Virus record (IMG/VR): IMGVR_UViG_3300046167_000825
Coordinates: 62,001-126,000 of that record
Reading direction: 5' to 3' (one strand)
DNA length: 64,000 nt
Position 1 is the stretch's first letter. The number at the start of each line of letters is the position of its first letter. Both the position numbers and the translations under genes were made by a program. The notes under the pieces were generated by a model. That model was not told where the DNA came from and did not search any database. It saw nothing but the letters and a program-made list of their open reading frames with translations. Shown piece after piece: positions 10,623 through 29,980 of this stretch.

Positions 10623-10656
10623 AGCCTCCCGTCAATTCTGTGGGAGGCTTTTTTTT
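10623..10656 (+). terminator. Intrinsic terminator
   Basis: agcctccc / gggaggct stem followed by T-run. Confidence 0.7.
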
Positions 10657-10667
10657 AGAGGTATGAA

Positions 10668-11249
10668 ATGAAGATATTGTGGTTTGACCTAGAAACAACT
10701 GGCTTAGACAAAGACACCAACACCATCCTTGAGATAGGGATTGTCGTTACGGACATGGAGGGGAATGTTTTGAGTGCTTGGGACACCAAGATTAAACCCA
10801 CACCCAACGACATAGCACGGGCATCAAAACGAGCCTTGGAGATTAACGGCTACACCACAAAAGGGTGGGAGGATGCTCCAACTCCAGAGGAAATTGCCCC
10901 CATCATTCGTGAGAAGTTCAATGGGAAATATATTCTCGGTGGTCATAATGTCGCTCACTTTGACGTACCCTTTCTGAAAGCGTGGTTGAAGAAACACAAC
11001 CAAGACCCCAACATTGGATATAGATTTTTAGACACCATGAGTACGGCAGTCGAACATCTTTTCCCTTGTGGGCTGAAATCAGCCTCCCTTGTCAATATCC
11101 GAAAGGCATTGAATATTGAAACGGGGAAAGCACACACTGCTCTTGCTGACACACTCGCTTGTGCTGAGGCATACCGTCAAATGGCTCGTTCCTCTCTTAT
11201 CAAACGACTATGGTGGTCGTATGTCATCCCCAAGAGGATGAAGCAATAA
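10668..11249 (+). CDS. DEDDh 3'-5' exonuclease (DnaQ-like)
   Basis: FDLETTGL (ExoI), GHNVAHFDVPFL (ExoII), HTALADT (ExoIII). Confidence 0.9.
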   Translation: MKILWFDLETTGLDKDTNTILEIGIVVTDMEGNVLSAWDTKIKPTPNDIARASKRALEINGYTTKGWEDAPTPEEIAPIIREKFNGKYILGGHNVAHFDVPFLKAWLKKHNQDPNIGYRFLDTMSTAVEHLFPCGLKSASLVNIRKALNIETGKAHTALADTLACAEAYRQMARSSLIKRLWWSYVIPKRMKQ

Positions 11250-11289: not shown

Positions 11290-12732
11290 ATGAAACTTAA
11301 TTTTATCTACCCCATAAAGGCTTCTGATTTACCCAAAGTCGTTGCGATTTCCATGAAGATGGGGGTTAAGGCTTTTTTGTCCAAAGCCCCCTTCTTGAAA
11401 GAGAAGGTAAAACCCTCCTTAAAGAAGTTACGCATTGAAACAGAAGAGGGACTGCCCGTGAGAGTTTCATATTCTCCCCTCACGGGATTGATAAAAGTCA
11501 ATCCCGAAATGCGACAAATCCGAGATAACCGAAAGGGAATCGTACCCAATCTTCTGTTGGCGTTGGGTATGGGCTATTATGACTTTGGTTTGAGTAAGTC
11601 CGACCAGTTGTATTGGAGAAACCTCACAAGGCGAGAAAAGGTGGACTTGACCCTTCTGAAGCGTTCATCCTTTTCAGTGAGCCAAGTGGGGAAACCTCGT
11701 GTTCTGTTTGCCACCGAGTTATTGAAACACACTATCTTTCAAACACCCTCTGCTCTTTTAGAAACCTTTTTTGATGTGGGGACATCCGATATCATCGAAT
11801 TATCTCCCACGAGATTCAGAGGGCTAGGTCTTACGAGGGGCGAACGGAAGGAACAAATTGAAACTTCCAGTTCTCTGATCGACAGAAAAACAGTGTCTTT
11901 AGAAGATGCTTTGGATATCGCTGGAATCACTGGGTTGACTGACGACATGCGAGAGGCTGGTTACCGAACTGAACTAGATTATGACCAATCGGGGATTATG
12001 GAGTTCAGAGCCTATTCTGGTTCAAGAGTCGTCCTACAAATGAAGCGTTACTTCTTTGATGATATCATCAAAAATGAATATTTCACCCTCAGTGAAGACT
12101 TGCAAAGACAAGGGTTAGGGATGAAAGCCTTCGCCACACAATTGACCTCAGCCATCAAACATGGTGTTGAAAAGATACAGTTGGTGGCAGAGAGGGAGGA
12201 TGCCTCTGGGTTGTTTGGATACAATGTTTGGTGGAGATTCGGTTTTGATGGTCACCTCGATAGTGGGAGATATGGGTCTTCCCTCGAAGCAAAAGCATGG
12301 TGGAAGCAAGCCGTTGTAGAAAAGATTCTTGGTGCATCCGATATGACTGCCCAGAAACAGTTCTACGGTATGGTCGAGAGGTTGAGACGAAAAACAGAGG
12401 AAGGCTCTTTCTCCAACTCAGCCTTCCAATATTTTATGGATGTCACCCTTGATGGTGAATACAGCAACTTAAAAGCCTTTCAAGCACCTAGTCGCAAAGA
12501 CTTCTTAGCCCTCGTGGATTTCTTTAATAAAGTTTCCCCCGAATCACCTTTTTTGAAAACAGAAGATTTGTCCTACAAGTCCCAGAGAATCCAGCGATTG
12601 ATGGAACTAGAAGGTTTTGAAGATTGGTGGCAACAATACGGGGATAAGTGGAACGCTTCATTGGATTTATCCTCTGGGGTAGAAAGCCCCTCAGTAGGTC
12701 TAGTTCGCAATTATATACGAGGACGGCAATGA
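11290..12732 (+). CDS. GNAT-like domain protein, paralogue 1
   Basis: FTLSEDLQRQGLG (acetyl-CoA motif A-like), GYNVWWRFGFDG, C-terminal LMELEGFEDWW...ASLDLS shared with paralogues 2 and 3. Confidence 0.6.
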   Translation: MKLNFIYPIKASDLPKVVAISMKMGVKAFLSKAPFLKEKVKPSLKKLRIETEEGLPVRVSYSPLTGLIKVNPEMRQIRDNRKGIVPNLLLALGMGYYDFGLSKSDQLYWRNLTRREKVDLTLLKRSSFSVSQVGKPRVLFATELLKHTIFQTPSALLETFFDVGTSDIIELSPTRFRGLGLTRGERKEQIETSSSLIDRKTVSLEDALDIAGITGLTDDMREAGYRTELDYDQSGIMEFRAYSGSRVVLQMKRYFFDDIIKNEYFTLSEDLQRQGLGMKAFATQLTSAIKHGVEKIQLVAEREDASGLFGYNVWWRFGFDGHLDSGRYGSSLEAKAWWKQAVVEKILGASDMTAQKQFYGMVERLRRKTEEGSFSNSAFQYFMDVTLDGEYSNLKAFQAPSRKDFLALVDFFNKVSPESPFLKTEDLSYKSQRIQRLMELEGFEDWWQQYGDKWNASLDLSSGVESPSVGLVRNYIRGRQ

Positions 12733-14771
12733 TATATGAAACAACCCCCAGACCCCCTTCGGATAGAAAAGGGTTTACGATAACATCCTTGAAAGACCTC
12801 TTTCATTTGGTTGATAAATACCCAACCAAAGAACCGTATATCATTGCTTGGGAATATGTTTTCATGGACTATTCTTGGGTTTGGATACATCCGAGAGTGT
12901 TGAAAGAAAGTAAACACATGCCAGAGTTCTGGATTCAGTTGGAGGACTGGAGAACAAAGGGCAATCTAGTTCGGTCAGATAACAAAAGTTGGGGTGATAA
13001 AAAGAAAAAATATGCCAAATTAACACAGCCCGTTGATGCAAAGAACTCGGAGGCACTTCGTTTTCCGAAGATTCTTGGAAGGGGTGTTCTTTCAATTGCT
13101 TATGGGACTTCACCAGAGAAAGCAGAACTCTTTAAGAAAAAATGTCTTGCTATCATAAAACGCTTTCAAGGGGATGATTCCCTCGCAGATATTAACGATC
13201 TGTACCCCCGAAAGATGAAGGTCACGGTTAGCGTTATCGAAACCTCTGAGAAATGGGTTATCAACTACGCAGAAGGAGTCCTAGAGATCAATGCTAGTGC
13301 GTTCTTGGGGCAGAGCCTTTCAAGGCAACAGATGCTGTTGTTGAGAGGATTCGGTTTGGCTTATTTCTCTTTGAAACTACGCCCGTCTGATATGAAGAAA
13401 TGGTTCAAGTATTACCGAGTCAAAAAACCCATTGCCAACCGTAAGTTCTATCACCCAGACATCACAAAACTTCAGATAAGTTGGGCAAGTGGTTTGGCTG
13501 ACTTCGTGTTGGGTGAAGAAACCTCTGTGATGAAGACCTTCAGAGAGTACTTCCAGAGAACCTCCGTTGGGGCTAGTCGGGTTGACCTCTCTCAGTTCCC
13601 AACTGAAATGGCTAGTTCGGTGATGGCATCTAGTATTGAACTAGCCGAACCCTTCAAAAACACTCCGTTTCAGAACCTTGAAACCAATGATATCCTAGAT
13701 ATTATGGGTTTGAGCGATGCTGCCGTTGCCACTCCCACTTTACTGGGAGGTTTGACGGGTGCTAATAAAGTGGTTGCCACTGACAACACCTTCAGAGATA
13801 TTGTGGCATACTCCATAGAAACCGATGAGGGGGGTAATGCTGAATGGGATCTTGGTGAGGGTAAAGCCGTATCAATTGCTAGAACCATTTGGTACAACAA
13901 GAAGACGGGTGTGTCTGCCATAGAGAATGACCTTTTTGAACTAGATGAGTCTTTTCAAGGGAAAGGTATTGGGGTTCGGATGGTTTCAAATCAGATAGAT
14001 ATGTGTCTAGCGAAGGGCATTCAAAAAATCATGTGCTATGCCGCAAGAGGTGATGATGAATATGTGGGCTACAAGGTGTGGCACAAAATGGGTTATGATG
14101 CCCTCCTAACTCCCAAGAATCTTGATGAGCACTCCGATGATGAAGATGGTTTCTATTGGTGGGTCTTGAAATCCCTAGAAAAGAAAATAAATGAATACCC
14201 CGAAGATATCTTGCACCGAGAAGTGGATCTTCTCTTACAAAAAGCCGTGGGGTCAAAGAAACCCAGTTATTTCAGAAGCCTCCCCACCCCATTCTTTTCT
14301 CGTTATATGAACATTCGCTTTGAAGAACCACCCTTTGCCAATGATTGGTCAGACCTCGTGCCGACTTTATCCAGAGCAGAGATTTTTCAATACTATTCTT
14401 TCTTGAGTGCTCAAATGAGTAAAGGTGACATCGTCAGTTTCAATCTGTTCAAAGACTTAGAACTCAGTATCACGAAAGACACCATACAAAATCTTATGGA
14501 TGTTGAAGGTTTTGAGGATTGGTGGGGTGAGAACGGTGGTGGATATAAAGCCACTCTTGATTTGAGTGAGGGTGTCAATAGCCCCGCTTATATGATTCTC
14601 TCTTTATACCGTCAAAAGAAGGGCTTGACAAAGATGTCCTCAGACGATCTATTGACTAAGGCAATGGGGTATCTTTCATCGAAAGACATCGCCCTCTTTG
14701 ATGAGGCTCGGAGAGAACTCCGTGTGGCTTCAAAATCTGTTTCTCGCATCGCCACTCTTTGGCTTGCATAA
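12729..14771 (+). CDS. GNAT-like domain protein, paralogue 2
   Basis: FELDESFQGKGIG, GYKVWHKMGYDA, LMDVEGFEDWW...ATLDLS. ATG 12729 overlaps the upstream TGA. Confidence 0.6.
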   Translation: MIYETTPRPPSDRKGFTITSLKDLFHLVDKYPTKEPYIIAWEYVFMDYSWVWIHPRVLKESKHMPEFWIQLEDWRTKGNLVRSDNKSWGDKKKKYAKLTQPVDAKNSEALRFPKILGRGVLSIAYGTSPEKAELFKKKCLAIIKRFQGDDSLADINDLYPRKMKVTVSVIETSEKWVINYAEGVLEINASAFLGQSLSRQQMLLLRGFGLAYFSLKLRPSDMKKWFKYYRVKKPIANRKFYHPDITKLQISWASGLADFVLGEETSVMKTFREYFQRTSVGASRVDLSQFPTEMASSVMASSIELAEPFKNTPFQNLETNDILDIMGLSDAAVATPTLLGGLTGANKVVATDNTFRDIVAYSIETDEGGNAEWDLGEGKAVSIARTIWYNKKTGVSAIENDLFELDESFQGKGIGVRMVSNQIDMCLAKGIQKIMCYAARGDDEYVGYKVWHKMGYDALLTPKNLDEHSDDEDGFYWWVLKSLEKKINEYPEDILHREVDLLLQKAVGSKKPSYFRSLPTPFFSRYMNIRFEEPPFANDWSDLVPTLSRAEIFQYYSFLSAQMSKGDIVSFNLFKDLELSITKDTIQNLMDVEGFEDWWGENGGGYKATLDLSEGVNSPAYMILSLYRQKKGLTKMSSDDLLTKAMGYLSSKDIALFDEARRELRVASKSVSRIATLWLA

Positions 14772-14818
14772 TTTATCTATATCTCTATTTATGTGATGAC
14801 TTTTATTAGGAGTATTCT

Positions 14819-17140
14819 ATGAAAAAACAAGCAAAACTCTCTCGGATTCCAGCAGAGGATGAAACTTCAATCGGTGTCCCTATGAAGTTTTTGGGGAAGC
14901 CTTACACAGTTACAGCCCCAGAAAGCCAAATGGATGAGATATCTATGTTGTGGGCGAACTGGAAACCCTCCATGACAATGTTGAATAAAAATAGTCTTTC
15001 ATACAAGACAGTCCCGAAGTTCAAACGGGGTGTTCGGAACTTGATGAGTAAGAACAGTTTTATGCTCTCTATGTCAGATGAGAAATGGGTTTTCAACTGG
15101 TCATTGGCTCAACAGACTCTCGAAATCAATGTCCAAGCGAAAATGTCGAAAGCGAAAATCAGACGATTGGCTGCCTTTGCTTTTGGGATTATGATGTATG
15201 ACACGGGCCTCAAGCCAAAATCTCGAATCTTTTTCAAGCGTAAAATCAAGAGAGAGAAGCCCCCATTACAAGGTATCCAAAAATATCTCGGTTTCTTGAA
15301 AGACGGTATGGCGTTGGGTCGTGCAAGAGCCGCTTTCGCTTTCGGCTTTATGATGCACTTGGAACAAGTCAGTAAAAAGTTTTTTGGTCATCCCCTCCAT
15401 GCAATGGTGGGAGAGGTCTTCTTCGACAAAAACAACTTTGTTGTTGATGAAGAAACACAATACACCCGCTTTGAGATAGATGAAGAAAGTCCTCTTGGTT
15501 ATGAGTTTGACTCAGAGCGTTTTGACCTTGTTTATAAAGGGAAATCAGAAAGTCAGATTGCTGCAATGAAACGGGTTACTGTTGCTGGGATGGATTATGA
15601 AACAGCCCTAGATTCTACTGGGATTGCCCCCTTCACAAACGCTTTGAAAAAATATATCACCAATGCCGTGAATGACCCTCAGAGCCGAAAACACTCTGAA
15701 GTTCTTAGGGGTTTAGGATTAGGTCAGTCTTCTCAGTTTGATCCCAACAAGTTCGAGTTACGGCTTAATGTTGGTTCAAGTAGTATAGGCTTTCGTCTTA
15801 CTTATAATGGCAGACATTGTTGTAACGGGTCTCGTAGTCAAATGACAAAAAACACACACTACAACGCTTTGTGTGAAGTGTCTAGTTCTTTTCAAGGATT
15901 GGGTGCTGGGATGCACATGTCGGCTTCTCAGATTGAACACGCAATGAAAACGGGTAAGAAGAAGATTAAGGTTTCTGCCGCTTTGGATGGTGGTTGGAGA
16001 ACTTGGAACAAGTTCGGTTTTGAGTCCAATAACCCAGTTATGGGTATAGTCAATGGTGCAAAAAGTTGGTGTGAGAAGTCTGTCGATGCCAAAATCTACG
16101 AGATGGGTTATGTAGATCGTCAACAAGTGATGACGGATCTCATGGTGGGTATGGTTCAACAACTCGGGGGGGCTTCTGCCTTCAGTGGTGCAAGCACGAC
16201 TCAAACTGGCCCCGTTACTCCAGTATTACCTTCAGATTCAAATGCAGATATTGCAGAAATCTTGAAGGAAGTGATTGATACCTCTGGTTCGTATTCGGGA
16301 GCGATGAAAAGGATGCTTCAAGCCGCTGGACTCCCACCAACGGCAAACAAAAGACATATAACCACTTGGTTTGCTGGTAATACCGTCACAGTGGCTCAAC
16401 AACAGAAAGTACATGATTATTTCACTTCGGGTAGTTCTGGCTTTGAAGATAAGTTCCGTAGATTGCGTGGTTATCCTCCTCGTGCGGGGCAATCAAGATC
16501 AAATGTTAATACCTCTCAAATGAACTCAGATATCAAAGGGTTAATAGAGTCTTTTGGTTGGTTTGGTGGTGAAGCCTTTAACGGCACATCCGTTCTTAAC
16601 CTCATCAAATCTCCTCAGTTCGATGTTGTTTTTGGTTATGATAACTTGCCTAAAATTGTGGCGTTCTTCCGTTCTAAAAACTATGAGGATCAAGTTCCAG
16701 CACTCACGAAAGCAAAACTCACTCCTAGAACACAGTACATGCAAGATTGTATGGAACTAGAGGGTTTCTCAAAGTGGTGGTCAGAGGGTGGTGGTCGCAA
16801 TTGGAGTGGAACACTTGACCTCACAGACGGGAAATACTCTATTGCTGTTTTGGCGATGGATCATTATCGAAAAATGAAAGTTCAAAACAAGCCCGATGTT
16901 TATGCAGAGGATTCAGCCTTTCAGCGTGCTCGTGTTGCAAGTGACATGACTTCTATTATTGATGCTGATATCCTTGAGAACTTTGTCAATATACCAGAAT
17001 CTGAAGAATGTGGTGGTGGTCTTCTTCGTATGGATATTGCTTTGATGGAACAAGCAACTCGTAATGCTCGTCTTGAAAAGAAGGACTTGGAAAAAGGTGG
17101 TCTTGTTCGTGTTGCTTCTCGTTGGTTGGGTGGAGAGTAA
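14819..17140 (+). CDS. GNAT-like domain protein, paralogue 3
   Basis: CEVSSSFQGLGAG, GGWRTWNKFGFES, CMELEGFSKWW...GTLDLT. AGGAG RBS. Confidence 0.6.
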   Translation: MKKQAKLSRIPAEDETSIGVPMKFLGKPYTVTAPESQMDEISMLWANWKPSMTMLNKNSLSYKTVPKFKRGVRNLMSKNSFMLSMSDEKWVFNWSLAQQTLEINVQAKMSKAKIRRLAAFAFGIMMYDTGLKPKSRIFFKRKIKREKPPLQGIQKYLGFLKDGMALGRARAAFAFGFMMHLEQVSKKFFGHPLHAMVGEVFFDKNNFVVDEETQYTRFEIDEESPLGYEFDSERFDLVYKGKSESQIAAMKRVTVAGMDYETALDSTGIAPFTNALKKYITNAVNDPQSRKHSEVLRGLGLGQSSQFDPNKFELRLNVGSSSIGFRLTYNGRHCCNGSRSQMTKNTHYNALCEVSSSFQGLGAGMHMSASQIEHAMKTGKKKIKVSAALDGGWRTWNKFGFESNNPVMGIVNGAKSWCEKSVDAKIYEMGYVDRQQVMTDLMVGMVQQLGGASAFSGASTTQTGPVTPVLPSDSNADIAEILKEVIDTSGSYSGAMKRMLQAAGLPPTANKRHITTWFAGNTVTVAQQQKVHDYFTSGSSGFEDKFRRLRGYPPRAGQSRSNVNTSQMNSDIKGLIESFGWFGGEAFNGTSVLNLIKSPQFDVVFGYDNLPKIVAFFRSKNYEDQVPALTKAKLTPRTQYMQDCMELEGFSKWWSEGGGRNWSGTLDLTDGKYSIAVLAMDHYRKMKVQNKPDVYAEDSAFQRARVASDMTSIIDADILENFVNIPESEECGGGLLRMDIALMEQATRNARLEKKDLEKGGLVRVASRWLGGE

Positions 17141-17188
17141 TGAAGAGCCTCGTTTCTCGCATTGCTTCTCGGCACATGGGTGATGAAG

Positions 17189-24760: not shown

Positions 24761-25354
24761 ATGACTATACTATCCATAAATCAAGGGGATTGCTTGGAGC
24801 ATTTGACAACGATGCCAGACGGTTCTGTTGACAGTGTATTGTGTGATCCACCCTATGGGTTGAAGTTCTTCTCACACAACGGTGGGTTTGATAACATAGG
24901 GAACGCCACCCAACAGAAAGAATGGCATCGTGAATGGGTGACACACGCATATCGGCTGTTGAAACCCAACGGTGTTATCAAAGCCTTTTCTAGTCCACGA
25001 ACTCTGCACCATCTGTTGGCGATAATGGTGGAGATCGGCTTTGAGGTGTCCGTAGATTCTTGGTTGTATGTGTCTGGGCGACCAAAGACCATTGATGTGG
25101 CAAAGAGTATTACGGCTTACGAACTAACGGGTTCTTCCTATCAAGGGAAGTTCCACGAACTATCCAAAGGACACAAGAGGTCGAAACTAGACATAGACGA
25201 CTATGTGAATCGAGGGAAGTTCTTCACAAAGGGGCATCAAGAAACCCTAGATTTTGAACTAACCGAGAACGGTCAGAAATGGGATGGATGGCAGTACGGA
25301 TTGAAACCAGCATTTGAACCAATAATTATGGGCTATAAAGGAGCAAAACAATGA
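24761..25354 (+). CDS. N4/N6 DNA methyltransferase, N-terminal catalytic module only (N1)
   Basis: GDCLE, CDPPY, RLLKPNG, YVSGRPK, LKPAFEP. Stops without an FxGxG motif. Confidence 0.8.
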   Translation: MTILSINQGDCLEHLTTMPDGSVDSVLCDPPYGLKFFSHNGGFDNIGNATQQKEWHREWVTHAYRLLKPNGVIKAFSSPRTLHHLLAIMVEIGFEVSVDSWLYVSGRPKTIDVAKSITAYELTGSSYQGKFHELSKGHKRSKLDIDDYVNRGKFFTKGHQETLDFELTENGQKWDGWQYGLKPAFEPIIMGYKGAKQ

Positions 25355-27261
25355 CAACATTAACACTAATGAATGGCGATTGTGTCGCCAAGATGAAAGA
25401 GATGGCAGACGAATCTGTGGATGCTGTTCTGTGTGACCCCCCGTACGGACTGAAGTTCATGAACAAGGATTTCGATGATTTGGGTGAGGGGAAACAACAG
25501 AGAGAGTGGCATGTCCAATGGGTGAAAGAAGCCTTTCGAGTTCTGAAACCGAATGGGGTTATGAAAGCCTTTGGGGGAACTAGAACCTACCAACATCTTC
25601 TTGCAGCAATGGCAGAAGTGGGATTCTCTGTTGACCTTTCTGTCTGGGCATACGGATGTCTATCGGAAGACACCGAAATACTTACGGGCGAAGGGTGGGT
25701 TGAACAATCAAAACTCAATAATGGTTCTATGGTTGTGTCCTATTGTATAGACAAGGACACTTATCAAGTGCAAGCCGTTGAGGAGGTAGTTCGATATGAA
25801 TACAAGGATACCGCTTACAGAATACAATCAGATCATACAGACCAAATCGTGTCCCGAAACCATCGTTGCATTGTTGAACGAGAGGGAGAAAGAACTTTTC
25901 TTTTCGCAGAACACTTGCAAGCAAACGAAGTCGTACCCTTTGTGGAGAGTGTGTCGATACGAGGGTTGCGAAACGATCTTTCAAACGGATACAACACGGC
26001 ACGGGCTAAGAAAGAAACTCTGTTCGACCATTCGAGCACACTATCCGACAAAGACTTGCAAGGGGTGTCACAAGGAGTTTCAAACCAGAGAGAAAACAAC
26101 AAAGTATTGTTCGAGGGCATGTCGACCACCTACATGGGTGACGAAAGTATGCAAGGGGTGCAACAAAGAGTTTCAAACAAAGAGATCCTCACAGACTTGG
26201 TGCAAGCGAGAATGTATGACACTGCCGAAGATCACAAAAGAGTGTCAAGGTTGTGGGAAAGAGTTTCAAGTACCAGATGGGAAAGTGGGGCGAGCAAGGT
26301 TGTATTGCAAGCAAGAATGTCAGAGGAAACCAAAGGTGGAATTGACTTGTTATGTCTGCCAAAAGGTGATCCTAGTGAGAGCAAGAAGATTAGAGCGAGC
26401 AAAAAATCCAACTTGTTCAAGGCAGTGCAACGGAGTTCTGAGGGGCGAGGAATGGAAAGCACACGCTCACAAGGGGCGGGCGAACTGGTCACAAGAGAGC
26501 GAACAAGCCTTAGTGGAGAGAATGACGGGAAGCACCAACCCAGCGTGGAAGGGTGGGGTGACCTATCGCAATCGCAAGGGGAACTACATAACTCAGAGTA
26601 TCGCTTATGTGAGATGCCCAACCGAGTACACCTCAATGGCGAGGAAAGACGGGTATGTGATGGAACATCGTTTGAAAGTGGCACAAGCAGTTGGCAGACC
26701 ACTGACGAGAACCGAATGTGTTCATCACATCAATCACAACGCAGAGGACAATCGGTTGGAGAACTTGATGTTGTTCAAGAACAATCGGGATCACAAACTG
26801 TACGAAGCACATGGGAAACCCGAACCACTTTGGCAACCGTCACCCCAATAGAGTACGAGGGCATTGTATGGTGTGTGAAAGTACCAACGGGTGCTTTTGT
26901 CGCTAGACGGAATGGCAAGGTCTTTGTTACGGGGAACTCTGGCTTCCCAAAATCCCTGAATATAAGTAAGAAACTGGACTCAAGACATAAAGCCCGAACG
27001 GGTGAGGAAGGGGCTATCATTGGTTTCACGAAAGGAGTTGGTGGCGAGAACATCAATGATATCGTGGCTGGTAAAGAAGTGCGAACCACAGATGAAGAAG
27101 GTGGCAAAGGTGTGGGTGCTTACGGTACGGGTGCGAAGCAAGTAGCCGTTGATGTTCCCGTCAGAGAGTGGGTCACAGACGAAGCGAAGACTTGGGAAGG
27201 CTGGGGCACGTCTTTGAAGCCAGCCTTTGAGCCAGTGTGTGTAGGATACAAAAGAGTATGA
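25351..27261 (+). CDS. N4/N6 DNA methyltransferase N-terminal module (N2) containing an intein
   Basis: GDCVA, CDPPY, RVLKPNG, AYG|CLSEDTEILT...VFVTGN|SGFPKS, LKPAFEP. No FxGxG motif. Confidence 0.85.
   Translation: MTTLTLMNGDCVAKMKEMADESVDAVLCDPPYGLKFMNKDFDDLGEGKQQREWHVQWVKEAFRVLKPNGVMKAFGGTRTYQHLLAAMAEVGFSVDLSVWAYGCLSEDTEILTGEGWVEQSKLNNGSMVVSYCIDKDTYQVQAVEEVVRYEYKDTAYRIQSDHTDQIVSRNHRCIVEREGERTFLFAEHLQANEVVPFVESVSIRGLRNDLSNGYNTARAKKETLFDHSSTLSDKDLQGVSQGVSNQRENNKVLFEGMSTTYMGDESMQGVQQRVSNKEILTDLVQARMYDTAEDHKRVSRLWERVSSTRWESGASKVVLQARMSEETKGGIDLLCLPKGDPSESKKIRASKKSNLFKAVQRSSEGRGMESTRSQGAGELVTRERTSLSGENDGKHQPSVEGWGDLSQSQGELHNSEYRLCEMPNRVHLNGEERRVCDGTSFESGTSSWQTTDENRMCSSHQSQRRGQSVGELDVVQEQSGSQTVRSTWETRTTLATVTPIEYEGIVWCVKVPTGAFVARRNGKVFVTGNSGFPKSLNISKKLDSRHKARTGEEGAIIGFTKGVGGENINDIVAGKEVRTTDEEGGKGVGAYGTGAKQVAVDVPVREWVTDEAKTWEGWGTSLKPAFEPVCVGYKRV
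25781..25787 (+). promoter_or_regulatory. Internal Shine-Dalgarno AGGAGGT for the nested HNH ORF
   Basis: 8 nt before ATG 25796, encoded within intein codons. Confidence 0.7.
25796..26851 (+). CDS. HNH homing endonuclease with four CxxC...CxxxC Zn repeats, overprinted inside the intein in a different frame
   Basis: GYVMEHRL...VHHINHNAEDNRLENL (HNH_3-like), NPAWKGG, repeated CKGC.KEFQ...CSRAC, own RBS. Confidence 0.88.
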   Translation: MNTRIPLTEYNQIIQTKSCPETIVALLNEREKELFFSQNTCKQTKSYPLWRVCRYEGCETIFQTDTTRHGLRKKLCSTIRAHYPTKTCKGCHKEFQTREKTTKYCSRACRPPTWVTKVCKGCNKEFQTKRSSQTWCKRECMTLPKITKECQGCGKEFQVPDGKVGRARLYCKQECQRKPKVELTCYVCQKVILVRARRLERAKNPTCSRQCNGVLRGEEWKAHAHKGRANWSQESEQALVERMTGSTNPAWKGGVTYRNRKGNYITQSIAYVRCPTEYTSMARKDGYVMEHRLKVAQAVGRPLTRTECVHHINHNAEDNRLENLMLFKNNRDHKLYEAHGKPEPLWQPSPQ

Positions 27262-27329
27262 CTTTTCTTGCGAACCACTATTTTGTCTGCTACCCTAATA
27301 CAACCAACCAACAGCGAAAGGAGTTTGTT

Positions 27330-27941
27330 ATGGATTGTGTGTGTAAGGGCTGTGGGAAAGACTTTCGTGTTTCTCCCAGTGTTATCCGAAAGGGTGGTGG
27401 TAAGTATTGTTCAAGGGCTTGCACGAAAAAAGGTGAGAACCGAGAGTGTCCTACATGTGGTTCGCAGTTTTATGTCAAGAACGCAGAAATCAAGAGGGGC
27501 TATGGCACATACTGTTCGAGAGAGTGTGCCAACCCAGCACGAGGATTGAGTGGTGAAAACCATCCTCAATGGAAGGGTGGTAAGTACAAGCATGGTGACG
27601 GTTATATAATGGTGCGTGTAGGCACGGATAAATACGAACTAGAGCATCGTGTAGTGATGGCGAACCATTTGGGTCGGGAACTGAAAACCCACGAGCATGT
27701 TCATCACATCAATGGTGTGAAGGATGACAACCGTATAGAGAATCTTGAACTGACTACGGCAAGCCAGCACACGAAAGAGCATCACGCTCCCAAGAAGGAT
27801 TTATCGACTTGGATGGCAGTCGCTTGTTTGAGTTGTGGGAATGTCTTCGCTGAACGGAAGAAAAAGGTAGAGAGAAACCCGAACTGTTTTTGCAACAGAG
27901 ATTGTTATATCGCTGGCAAGAAAAAGAGAGTTGTGCAATGA
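27330..27941 (+). CDS. Free-standing HNH endonuclease with Zn-ribbon repeats
   Basis: AAGGAG RBS before ATG 27330. HPQWKGG, LEHRVVM...HVHHINGVKDDNRIENL. Confidence 0.88.
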   Translation: MDCVCKGCGKDFRVSPSVIRKGGGKYCSRACTKKGENRECPTCGSQFYVKNAEIKRGYGTYCSRECANPARGLSGENHPQWKGGKYKHGDGYIMVRVGTDKYELEHRVVMANHLGRELKTHEHVHHINGVKDDNRIENLELTTASQHTKEHHAPKKDLSTWMAVACLSCGNVFAERKKKVERNPNCFCNRDCYIAGKKKRVVQ

Positions 27942-28225
27942 ACAAGTGTAATAAATGTGGGAAAGAATTGAGTATGTATTATGTGACGGTGGGCGTGATG
28001 GGGAACTTCTGTGGAACAGAGTGCCTAGAAGCCTACCGAACTTATTTACAGAAACAAACTGAACAGAATGCCTACAAGAATCTTTGCAAACTGATTTATG
28101 CAATGAATAGAGTGATGCTCTCCCAAGACCCTTCCGAAAAGGATGTCATCTTCATAAAGAGGGTAGAAGCAGAGGTTTTGAATATGAAAGACTGGATCAC
28201 ACAACTAGCAAAAGTAGAGCAATGA
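27938..28225 (+). CDS. Small Zn-finger protein
   Basis: CNKC...FCGTEC, ATGA coupling. Confidence 0.55.
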   Translation: MNKCNKCGKELSMYYVTVGVMGNFCGTECLEAYRTYLQKQTEQNAYKNLCKLIYAMNRVMLSQDPSEKDVIFIKRVEAEVLNMKDWITQLAKVEQ

Positions 28226-28285
28226 CAGATTTTTGGAAAAAACTAGATGAGGCTTTCGCCTATATCTTTCAAACAAAGAAGAAAA

Positions 28286-29980
28286 ATGACAATACTAAAA
28301 TTAATGAAAGGCGATTGCCTCGAAAAAATGAAGAACCTTGAAAGTTCTTCTGTCCCCTCTATCTTATGCGACCCACCTTACGGCTTGGAGTTCATCACTG
28401 AACTAGAAGGGAAATCACGGAACTTGATGAACCCCACTAGCGAAGCAGATATCAAACGGAAAGAAGACTATGGGAACTCGTACGCTGGGCGTGCCTCCAA
28501 CCTTCCCGATTTGGGTAAGTTCGGACAGTATGGGAAAGGGGTACAAGAGTGGCACAAGGGTTGGGTTGGGGCTTGTCATAGGGTATTGTCAGAAGACGGC
28601 TCGTTGATGGCTTTCAATTCCAGCAAGACCTCTCACCGAATGATAGCCGCTATGGTCGAACTAGGGTTTCACATTTCTATTGATGCTTGGGTATATCTGT
28701 CTGGGATGCCCAAAGCACGAGACTTAGGGGCTGGTGTAGGTTGGTATACAAACTTGAAGCCCTCTTATGAACCTATCATTGTGTGCCGAAAACAAAAAGG
28801 AGAAACTATGCACAAATCACATTTAATTTATATCGGACGGAAGCCTTTGAGCGAGAGGAACATCGCAGAGAATGTTTTGAAGCACGGGACGGGTGCGATG
28901 AACATTGATGCTTGTCGAATAGGTGACGAGGAGCGAACTTACACGGGAAGTGGTGAATCTCAAATGAGATACAATGACGACCGTGCTGGTTTGGCAGATG
29001 GGAGAGGAAAAGAACTTGAGTTCACGGTAAAAGGTCGATGGCCCGCAAACTCTATCTTCTCTAGTTCATGTGCCAAGATTCTTACAAAGCAGATTGGGGC
29101 AGAGGCTTCCACTTATTTTTTCATTTCTGAGGATCGTTTTGATAACCACAATTCGTATAACAACAACAAGGAGAACACTATGAATGTACCATCAGATTTA
29201 TTAGACTATTTACACACGATGATTACCCCCACACATGTGGGAGGGGAAAGTCTCATCATCCAAGAGGGCTTGAACGATCACGACTTCAGCCAATACACCG
29301 ACAATCAATGGCACGGTTGTATCGCTGTTGGAACACCGACAGAGGAAACAAGCAAGGAACTTATGAGAGTCATGAAGGCTGGTGCTCATTTGATGTTGAT
29401 AGCCCCCGAAGAAGAACCCACTGGTTATAAGGGTGCTTGTCAGATTGAGGACACGGGATTTGAAATCAGAGATTCTATATTTTGGGCGAGAGAAACCGAC
29501 CCAGAGAATCCCAACTTCATGTACATGCCAAAGGCTTCACGGAGTGAGAGAGAACTAGGCACAGAGCATTTGAAAAAAGTCAGTGGTGCTGAAGCCGTTG
29601 ATCGGAAAGAAGGTTCTGCTGGGATGGACAACCCCCGTGCTGGTGCTGGTAGAACAGCCACAGAGATTGGTAATTTTCATCCGACTGTCAAGCCCATTGG
29701 GATTATGGAATGGTTGGCTCGTGATGTACCAAAAGGTGCGACAGTTCTAGACCCATTTATGGGTTCTGGCACTATGGGTATCGCTTGTGTGAAGACGGGA
29801 CACTCTTATATAGGCACAGAGATTGACGAGAGTTACTTCCCTATTGCAGATGCTCGTATCCGTCATTGGAATGAAACCTATTGTGCTTGGGATAGTGCTG
29901 AGGTCATTTCTGACCTAGATGAGGAAGAGACAGAGGATGTCCTAGCCCCTATCGACTTGAACAGTTTCTTGGGTTTTTAG
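28286..29980 (+). CDS. Beta-class N4/N6 DNA methyltransferase: N module (N3) + middle module + C module
   Basis: CDPPY, YLSGMPK, IGRKPL...NIDACRI...GRWPAN, HPTVKP, DPFMGSG. In-frame AAGGAG+ATG at 28808 and 29180. Confidence 0.85.
   Translation: MTILKLMKGDCLEKMKNLESSSVPSILCDPPYGLEFITELEGKSRNLMNPTSEADIKRKEDYGNSYAGRASNLPDLGKFGQYGKGVQEWHKGWVGACHRVLSEDGSLMAFNSSKTSHRMIAAMVELGFHISIDAWVYLSGMPKARDLGAGVGWYTNLKPSYEPIIVCRKQKGETMHKSHLIYIGRKPLSERNIAENVLKHGTGAMNIDACRIGDEERTYTGSGESQMRYNDDRAGLADGRGKELEFTVKGRWPANSIFSSSCAKILTKQIGAEASTYFFISEDRFDNHNSYNNNKENTMNVPSDLLDYLHTMITPTHVGGESLIIQEGLNDHDFSQYTDNQWHGCIAVGTPTEETSKELMRVMKAGAHLMLIAPEEEPTGYKGACQIEDTGFEIRDSIFWARETDPENPNFMYMPKASRSERELGTEHLKKVSGAEAVDRKEGSAGMDNPRAGAGRTATEIGNFHPTVKPIGIMEWLARDVPKGATVLDPFMGSGTMGIACVKTGHSYIGTEIDESYFPIADARIRHWNETYCAWDSAEVISDLDEEETEDVLAPIDLNSFLGF

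Follow-up and report, generated by a model that had tools for sequence, protein, structure and literature searches.

The Alt protein of bacteriophage T4 is a packaged ADP-ribosyltransferase (ART), a protein-modifying enzyme that is delivered together with the phage DNA. To our knowledge, the acylation of proteins by phages is almost unexplored in comparison with ADP-ribosylation or phosphorylation. Two families of RimI-like GNATs were described by Iyer et al. (2017, J Bacteriol, PMC5512222) in the polyvalent proteins of phages, one of them typically beside an ART domain; the same authors predicted that those of phages are packaged into virions and delivered along with the DNA, found a zincin-like metallopeptidase domain (MPTase) to be the commonest partner domain, and mentioned a member from a marine phage. 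Their exemplars include a protein of an uncultured Mediterranean phage and gp113 of Mycobacterium phage Alice. Here, we describe three adjacent genes, for the proteins P0001, P0002 and P0003, in a stretch of 64,000 nucleotides (the window) that covers bases 62001-126000 of the 289-kb IMG/VR virus record IMGVR_UViG_3300046167_000825. At this size, and with a completeness of 66% as estimated by CheckV, the source is a giant phage. The three genes encode old paralogs of a protein with two modules, a putatively degenerate zincin-like N-module and a predicted GNAT C-module. While GNAT modules in phage polyvalent proteins are already published, the stand-alone triplicated form, the apparently dead zincin-like domain, the large lineage-specific helical insert, the recurrent terminal peptide and the occurrence in an abundant marine giant phage are new.

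The original prediction, made from the nucleotide sequence alone, placed three large tandem paralogs with a split GNAT-like domain at positions 11290-17140 of the window. Three co-oriented genes on the plus strand are located exactly there, and their products are homologous as judged from BLASTP, with similarities far above chance (E-values of 6e-21 for P0001 and P0002, 3e-9 in two segments for P0001 and P0003, and 1e-9 plus 8e-8 for P0002 and P0003). The motifs listed at that time were recovered from all three proteins, namely Q-x-x-G-x-G, G[YW]x[VT]WxxxG[FY] and [LC]M[ED][LV]EGFxxWW followed by LDL[ST], the sole departure being C-E-V in P0003 in place of the "F.L" ahead of the first of these motifs. 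Furthermore, variable inserts of about 105-260 amino acids had been estimated, and the measured spacing from G[YW]xxWxxxG[FY] to [LC]M[ED]xEGFxxWW is 117 amino acids in P0001, 132 in P0002 and 242 in P0003. A fourth copy of the domain was not found in the 289-kb record.

Three marine contigs (L005, L006 and L007), the proteins of which are 34-56% identical to those of the window, have kept the same gene order, with an exonuclease gene followed by the genes for type 1 (P0001), type 2 (P0002) and type 3 (P0003) proteins, a gene for a protein of 194 amino acids, and then SNF2 and DnaB. The insert length is steady within each type, at 117-118 amino acids in type 1, 115-146 in type 2 and 239-254 in type 3. 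In a maximum-likelihood tree, each type formed a group of its own (support values of 100/98, 92/90 and 100/99), and the trio family was separated from the compact members of the wider family, described below, with a support of 100/99. Taken together, the type-specific clades, the type-constant insert lengths and the conserved gene order indicate that both the triplication and the insert are old and that all three copies have been retained.

GNAT proteins have the topology beta1-alpha1-alpha2-beta2-4-alpha3-beta5-alpha4-beta6/7, and their motif A (Q/R-x-x-G-x-G/A) in the loop between beta4 and alpha3 binds the pyrophosphate of coenzyme A (CoA). We modeled residues 190-480 of P0001 with AlphaFold2 from an alignment (A3) of this segment with 24 close relatives and 100 compact instances of the domain, 125 sequences with a mean column identity of 13%. 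The resulting core model has a mean per-residue confidence (pLDDT) of 91.4 and a predicted template modeling score (pTM) of 0.87. The order of its elements agrees with this topology, with a beta strand, two helices and four strands, then alpha3 directly behind the Q-x-x-G-x-G loop, and then beta5 and a short helix alpha4, beyond which about five inserted helices, a short strand, two short helices, a last strand and a closing helix follow. Motif A occupies model residues 83-88, directly ahead of the helix at 87-101, and is intact in all three proteins, as Q-R-Q-G-L-G in P0001, Q-G-K-G-I-G in P0002 and Q-G-L-G-A-G in P0003.

Every one of the 45 Foldseek matches of the core model in PDB at E<=1e-3 has a GNAT fold (RimI, Ard1, HP0935, GCN5/PCAF and NatD are among them). 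Likewise, VIA-align recovered 314 chains at a Z-score of at least 5, and the best 50 of these 314 are essentially all GNAT-fold proteins; the top match was NatD (Z 7.5), with 144 residues aligned across model residues 7-284, that is, over the insert. The aligned ranges start at the N-terminal strands and end at model residues 271-291. RimI-type clusters were identified in the ESM atlas (TM 0.56-0.66 by target), all 20 PDB chains matched by the family profile at E<=10 were GNATs (best E 0.003), and weak matches to Acetyltransf_1 were found in 19 of the 125 family members. The GNAT assignment had been staked on the predicted structure having that fold, and the model that was run has it. Since the model, Foldseek, VIA-align and the profile matches in PDB all point in the same direction and motif A is intact in the three proteins, we consider it very likely that the trio has a GNAT fold with an insertion.

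The fold matches span both halves of the domain. What was previously called split is therefore better described as a single, complete GNAT domain into which a helical segment has been inserted after alpha4 and before beta6. The domain is GNAT-like as proposed, but it is interrupted at a fixed site rather than split, and we rejected a split over two genes or two polypeptides. The inserts in the trio compare with 15-47 amino acids (median 28) at the same site in the 100 compact members. RimI, NatD (Naa40) and GCN5, the best structural matches, have the fold, the motif A loop and the topology in common with the trio. However, the trio module is only 10-17% identical to them, and differs by the replacement of the tyrosine in alpha4 by an invariant tryptophan, by the extra closing helix and the large insert, and by a C-terminal signature of its own (EGxxWW...DL..G..S...Y).

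Six positions are invariant in the 125 sequences (R253, G275, G310, W314, G318 and W447 in P0001 numbering), and another eight are at least 90% conserved (N262, G277, Q284, Y311, D320, D459, S466 and Y475). Such conservation across very divergent sequences looks like that of an active site. We think that the three proteins are, with somewhat better than even chances, active acyl-CoA-dependent transferases, and that the predicted activity is probably directed at proteins.

To place the trio in a wider context, a profile of the family was searched against 1.84 billion cluster representatives at a threshold of E<=1e-3. This search identified 1611 cluster representatives, most of which align over the two conserved pieces only. 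The stand-alone members have a size of about 180-250 amino acids, so that the two conserved pieces form one compact domain of about 175 amino acids, which is present in one to four copies per polypeptide in other phages. The clade is a large, unnamed GNAT group with its own signature, and neither Pfam nor NCBIfam nor PHROGs has a model dedicated to it.

Nine giant proteins that contain the module were included in a Pfam scan, and portal, ART-PolyVal, ADPrib_exo_Tox, InPase, Zeta-toxin, 2H or SNF2 domains were identified in seven of them. One combines Portal_Mu with two module copies and ART-PolyVal (P0039), and another combines Phage_portal with 2_5_RNA_ligase2 (2H) and a module copy and is encoded directly after the large terminase in contig L009 (P0122). 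The remaining five contain ART-PolyVal and Zeta_toxin (P0040), ADPrib_exo_Tox (P0031), InPase (P0033), InPase and SNF2 (P0082) or 2_5_RNA_ligase2 (P0050), while P0037 gave a weak GNAT match only, and P0058 weak GNAT and ATLF matches only. These giant proteins are the effectors that Iyer et al. (2017) called polyvalent, and the clade of 1611 representatives is thereby tied to proteins that phages fuse to portals. By analogy with other phages, where this module occurs in fusion with portal proteins and ADP-ribosyltransferases, the trio probably represents effectors that modify host proteins. A further metagenomic relative, P0028 (1363 amino acids), contains four compact GNAT copies together with a SocA_Panacea antitoxin-type domain, which hints at a toxin-antitoxin-like link.

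Like the polyvalent-protein GNATs (PMC5512222), the compact relatives of the trio are RimI-like phage modules that occur in the same polypeptides as ART-PolyVal, portal, InPase, 2H, SNF2 and Zeta-toxin domains. In contrast, the trio is encoded by three separate genes with one zincin-like domain each and no giant fusion, and it differs from the compact polyvalent-type members by its helical insert of 117-242 amino acids and its replication-gene neighborhood. The window echoes the polyvalent domain set in an unfused form, with three zincin-like plus GNAT proteins, one protein that is 2H-like by motif, and SNF2.

The original prediction missed two features, the zincin-like domain at the N-terminus and the peptide at the C-terminus. 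The N-domain is common to all three paralogs. In the full-length AlphaFold model of P0002 (pLDDT 84.9), an N-domain at residues 1-85 is followed by the zincin-like domain at about 95-310, the GNAT domain at about 319-632 with the insert at about 463-582 (helices 472-564), and a long C-terminal helix at 651-679. In an exhaustive VIA search, residues 95-282 of the full-length model were matched to the anthrax lethal factor (1yqy_A, Z 7.4) and M1 aminopeptidases (Z 6-7), and further matches were to botulinum light chains, PPEP and Wss1, and to the dead N-terminal copies in the lethal factor (LF), EF and Certhrax. Zincins accounted for about 40 of the best 50 matches, with Z-scores of at most 7.4, and the toxin structures named here are matches in fold only. 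M34-like peptidases of jumbo phages were among the matches in BFVD.

The putative zincin core of residues 95-282 is like that of the anthrax lethal factor family (M34) and of the MPTase domains that polyvalent proteins contain. Unlike these, the N-domain has no HExxH motif, and its likeness to the dead N-terminal binding domain of LF and EF is one of principle only. Neither HExxH nor the downstream glutamate that would provide the third metal ligand was found in any of the 25 aligned relatives, and the would-be active-site helix (residues 197-216 in P0002) reads L-L-x-G-[FL]-G-L-A-Y. On these grounds we rejected an active metallopeptidase, and we suggest with moderate confidence, based on the model, that the N-domain is zincin-like and catalytically dead. 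Since the metal site would have been lost, the domain most likely serves in binding or as an adaptor. The extra domain at residues 1-85 of P0002 (positions 12729-12983) is well modeled, is present in type 2 proteins only, and gave no match in any search; searches of a protein atlas with residues 1-95 of P0002 and with the insert of P0003 gave no usable match.

We propose that the C-module is an N-acyltransferase that uses acyl-CoA, with the protein acetyltransferases RimI, NatD and GCN5 as its nearest kin, and that it would bind acetyl- or acyl-CoA by way of its intact Q-x-x-G-x-G loop. The acyl group would then be passed to an amine on a host (or phage) protein, perhaps a different one for each paralog, and the target could be set by the insert and the N-domain. 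The C-terminal helix of types 2 and 3, with its peptide R[IV]A[ST]xWL, might dock the proteins on a common partner. A role of the insert in the choice of target would be directly testable, because three old paralogs with the same catalytic core and different inserts are present in one phage, and the trio therefore amounts to a natural experiment on inserts.

The strict form of the peptide, R[IV]A[ST]R[WHY][LMI], occurs in six in-frame copies in the record compared with 0.005 in shuffles, and a looser pattern that allows leucine at the fifth position, as in the P0002 copy, occurs in seven copies compared with 0.025. Besides the copies in P0002, P0003 and P0163, the downstream protein of 194 amino acids, there is one at the C-terminal end of a SWIM-like protein of 131 amino acids, one near the C-terminal end of a protein of 105 amino acids, one inside a topoisomerase-IB-like protein of 976 amino acids and one inside a protein of 182 amino acids. 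The seven proteins are otherwise unrelated, the peptide is mostly terminal, and it has been retained at the same three places in L005-L007. The codons of the copies differ at synonymous sites, which indicates selection on the peptide rather than on the DNA, and we rejected a DNA-level repeat or regulatory element on the same grounds. That the peptide may act as a docking element is a guess, suggested by the recurrence of closely related peptides on other proteins of the same phage. In a bolder and rather unlikely scenario, the peptide could be a sorting or docking tag that gathers separately encoded effectors on one partner (the capsid interior, or an ejection or replication hub), as a non-covalent counterpart to the fusions in polyvalent proteins, in which case the three insert-diversified GNATs would form a host-modifying panel that is delivered together. 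The recurrence of the peptide provides a handle for finding any docking partner of these proteins. In the protein of 976 amino acids (G000:C1:250134-253064), where the topoisomerase-IB-like segment was recognized by eye only, there are two tag-like peptides, ISRIATRVF and ITRVASRYM.

Several observations weigh against the interpretation of the trio as effectors with an active GNAT and a degenerate zincin. First, no Pfam, NCBIfam or PHROG model matched any of the three proteins at threshold; Acetyltransf_1 matched P0002 with 15.6 bits, below the Pfam cut-off of 20.7, and did not match P0001 or P0003, while PHROGs gave PHROG 18050, with no function assigned, and NCBIfam gave nothing. Second, Z-scores of 6-7.5 in VIA-align are middling by the tool's own caveat. 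Third, the zincin-like call relies on the fold (Z<=7.4) with no support at the level of sequence, since a comparison by hhalign of the N-domain alignment with the ATLF-like part of P0058 revealed no relation. Textbook GNATs have a general-acid tyrosine in helix alpha4, and the invariant tryptophan at this position suggests that the chemistry may differ here. Type 3 also departs at two near-invariant positions, with tryptophan at 311 and glutamate at 320 in P0003; among the type 3 proteins examined, seven out of eight have the former and five out of eight the latter. Finally, the trio is located among replication genes (an RNase_T exonuclease, an SNF2 helicase, DnaB, DNA methylases and PolA) and not among structural genes.

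The last point bears on the suggestion of packaging and injection in the manner of T4 Alt. The two cases have the concept in common, and relatives of the trio carry fused ART domains that are broadly of the Alt kind, but the fold and the predicted chemistry of the trio are those of a GNAT rather than an ART, and we identified neither a capsid-targeting sequence nor a proteolytic site. An Alt-like ART identity of the trio itself was rejected, given the GNAT fold and no match to an ART family. What speaks for packaging is association only, through relatives fused to portal, ART-PolyVal and ADPrib_exo_Tox domains, and what speaks against it is the position beside replication genes; by this analogy, delivery with the virion is a tentative suggestion.

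The main rival explanation, which we consider possible but less likely than not, is that packaging does not take place and that the proteins, as active GNAT acyltransferases, are made early or midway in infection along with the replication genes. They would then act on proteins of the host or the phage inside infected cells, and their kinship with portal fusions would reflect shared ancestry only. In agreement with this, replication genes surround the trio not only in the window but also in L005 and L007, the trio belongs to a closely packed, co-oriented set of genes behind a terminator-like hairpin, and there is no adjacent gene for a portal, MuF or capsid protein. Four short contigs from one marine metatranscriptome fall on all three genes, which is weak support since DNA can be carried over into such libraries. 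Harder to reconcile with unpackaged enzymes are the module relatives that are physically fused to portals and the recurrent terminal peptide, which suggests sorting or docking; moreover, genes for virion proteins are often scattered in giant phages.

Another explanation, which we hold to be distinctly unlikely, is that the trio consists of acyltransferases with a non-protein substrate, such as aminoacyl-tRNA (like the toxins TacT, AtaT and KacT), a nucleotide or small-molecule defense signal, or a cell-wall precursor. AtaT, TacT, KacT and GmvT were matched by VIA-align with Z-scores of about 6, a distance of no more than 1.5 from the best protein acetyltransferases, fusions with Zeta toxin, InPase, 2H and Panacea antitoxin domains are present among the relatives, and the adjacent gene is 2H phosphoesterase-like by motif. 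The nearest structural classes are nevertheless RimI, NatD and GCN5, although the scores cannot separate the options, and the polyvalent GNATs were placed in a RimI-like clade by Iyer et al. (PMC5512222). It is very unlikely that the trio are pseudoenzymes or scaffolds that have kept the GNAT fold for binding of CoA or a partner, or for structure, without transfer: the substitutions in alpha4 and in type 3 (Y311W and D320E), the precedent for lost catalysis set by the N-domain and a Foldseek match to 2wpx, one of the known tandem GNATs with only one active copy, would fit such a role, but across the 125 sequences motif A, together with some 14 polar or aromatic positions, shows no or almost no variation, which is the pattern of an active site.

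The coordinates of the genes, domains and peptides are given in Table 1. The start codons of P0001-P0003 are backed by orthologs in other contigs (P0010 and P0012 for type 1).

Table 1. Genes, predicted domains and terminal peptides at the trio locus (aa, amino acids; positions in the window unless marked as record)
Feature	Protein and residues	Position	Strand	Remarks
Terminator-like hairpin		10623-10649		Strong; 10-bp stem with 6 G-C pairs, T-run; just before exonuclease gene
RNase_T-type exonuclease gene		10668-11249	+	First gene of the tightly packed run exonuclease-trio-2H-like
Gene 1, type 1	P0001, 480 aa	11290..12732	+	Zincin-like N-domain and insert-bearing GNAT (predicted); no C-terminal tail
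N-domain homologous to zincin-like domain of P0002, without HExxH	P0001 aa 1-189	11290..11856	+	Alignment A5; fold inferred from P0002 model
GNAT beta1 to alpha4 (predicted)	P0001 aa 190-325	11857..12264	+	Motif A Q272..G275.G277; G310-Y311..W314...G318-F-D320
Helical insert between alpha4 and beta6	P0001 aa 326-428	12265..12573	+	About five helices; DSSP, helices at model residues 143-235
GNAT C-terminal part (predicted)	P0001 aa 429-480	12574..12729	+	LMELEGFEDWW...LDLS...Y475; last strand(s) and closing helix
Gene 2, type 2	P0002, 680 aa	12729..14771	+	ATG overlaps P0001 stop
Zincin-like fold (predicted)	P0002 aa 96-308	13014..13652	+	N-helix, three-stranded sheet, two C-helices
Peptide RIATLWL	P0002 aa 673-679	14745-14765	+	Protein ends RIATLWL-A
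Gene 3, type 3	P0003, 773 aa	14819..17140	+	
Predicted domain layout	P0003			Zincin-like aa 1-249, GNAT ~250-700, 242-aa insert ~402-643, C-terminal tail
Peptide RVASRWL	P0003 aa 764-770	17108-17128	+	Protein ends RVASRWL-GGE
Downstream gene	P0163, 194 aa	17140..17724	+	Overlaps P0003 stop (TGATG)
Peptide RIASRHM	P0163 aa 7-13	17158-17178	+	Protein starts M-K-S-L-V-S-RIASRHM
Remaining peptide copies		Record G000:C1, 11221; 175432 (-); 251571; 269940		

The downstream protein P0163 contains two H-x-T motifs that are invariant in three orthologs, and it matched PHROG 36523, to which no function is assigned. Support for a 2H assignment was obtained neither from Pfam, nor from phmmer against PDB, nor from hhalign comparisons with the 2H segments in P0122 and P0050, where only the second H-x-T was aligned, without significance. 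The motifs as such suggest a 2H phosphoesterase-like protein. The SNF2 helicase gene is located about 2 kb beyond this gene.

Nearly letter-for-letter copies of the stretch were found in seawater and marine metagenomes from about 20 studies. No matches to deposited phage genomes were obtained with megablast of the region, or with tblastn using P0002, three compact members and a two-copy segment as queries, and no relatives were recovered when the family alignment was used in a pattern scan of IMG/VR. A scan for promoters and terminators gave no more sites than in shuffles. One of the metatranscriptome contigs (run X24) differs from window positions 13039-13066 by nine C>T changes and one G>C change within 28 bases, whereas three DNA runs show no difference from the window at these positions; this could represent a strain variant, an artefact or editing. 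Elsewhere in the window, at 24761-29980, an N6_N4 DNA methylase is present in pieces. Two open reading frames (ORFs) each cover only the first 80 or so positions of the Pfam model, one of them with an intein-splicing match, and these are followed by an HNH_3 endonuclease ORF and then by an ORF of 577 amino acids that corresponds to the remainder of the methylase.

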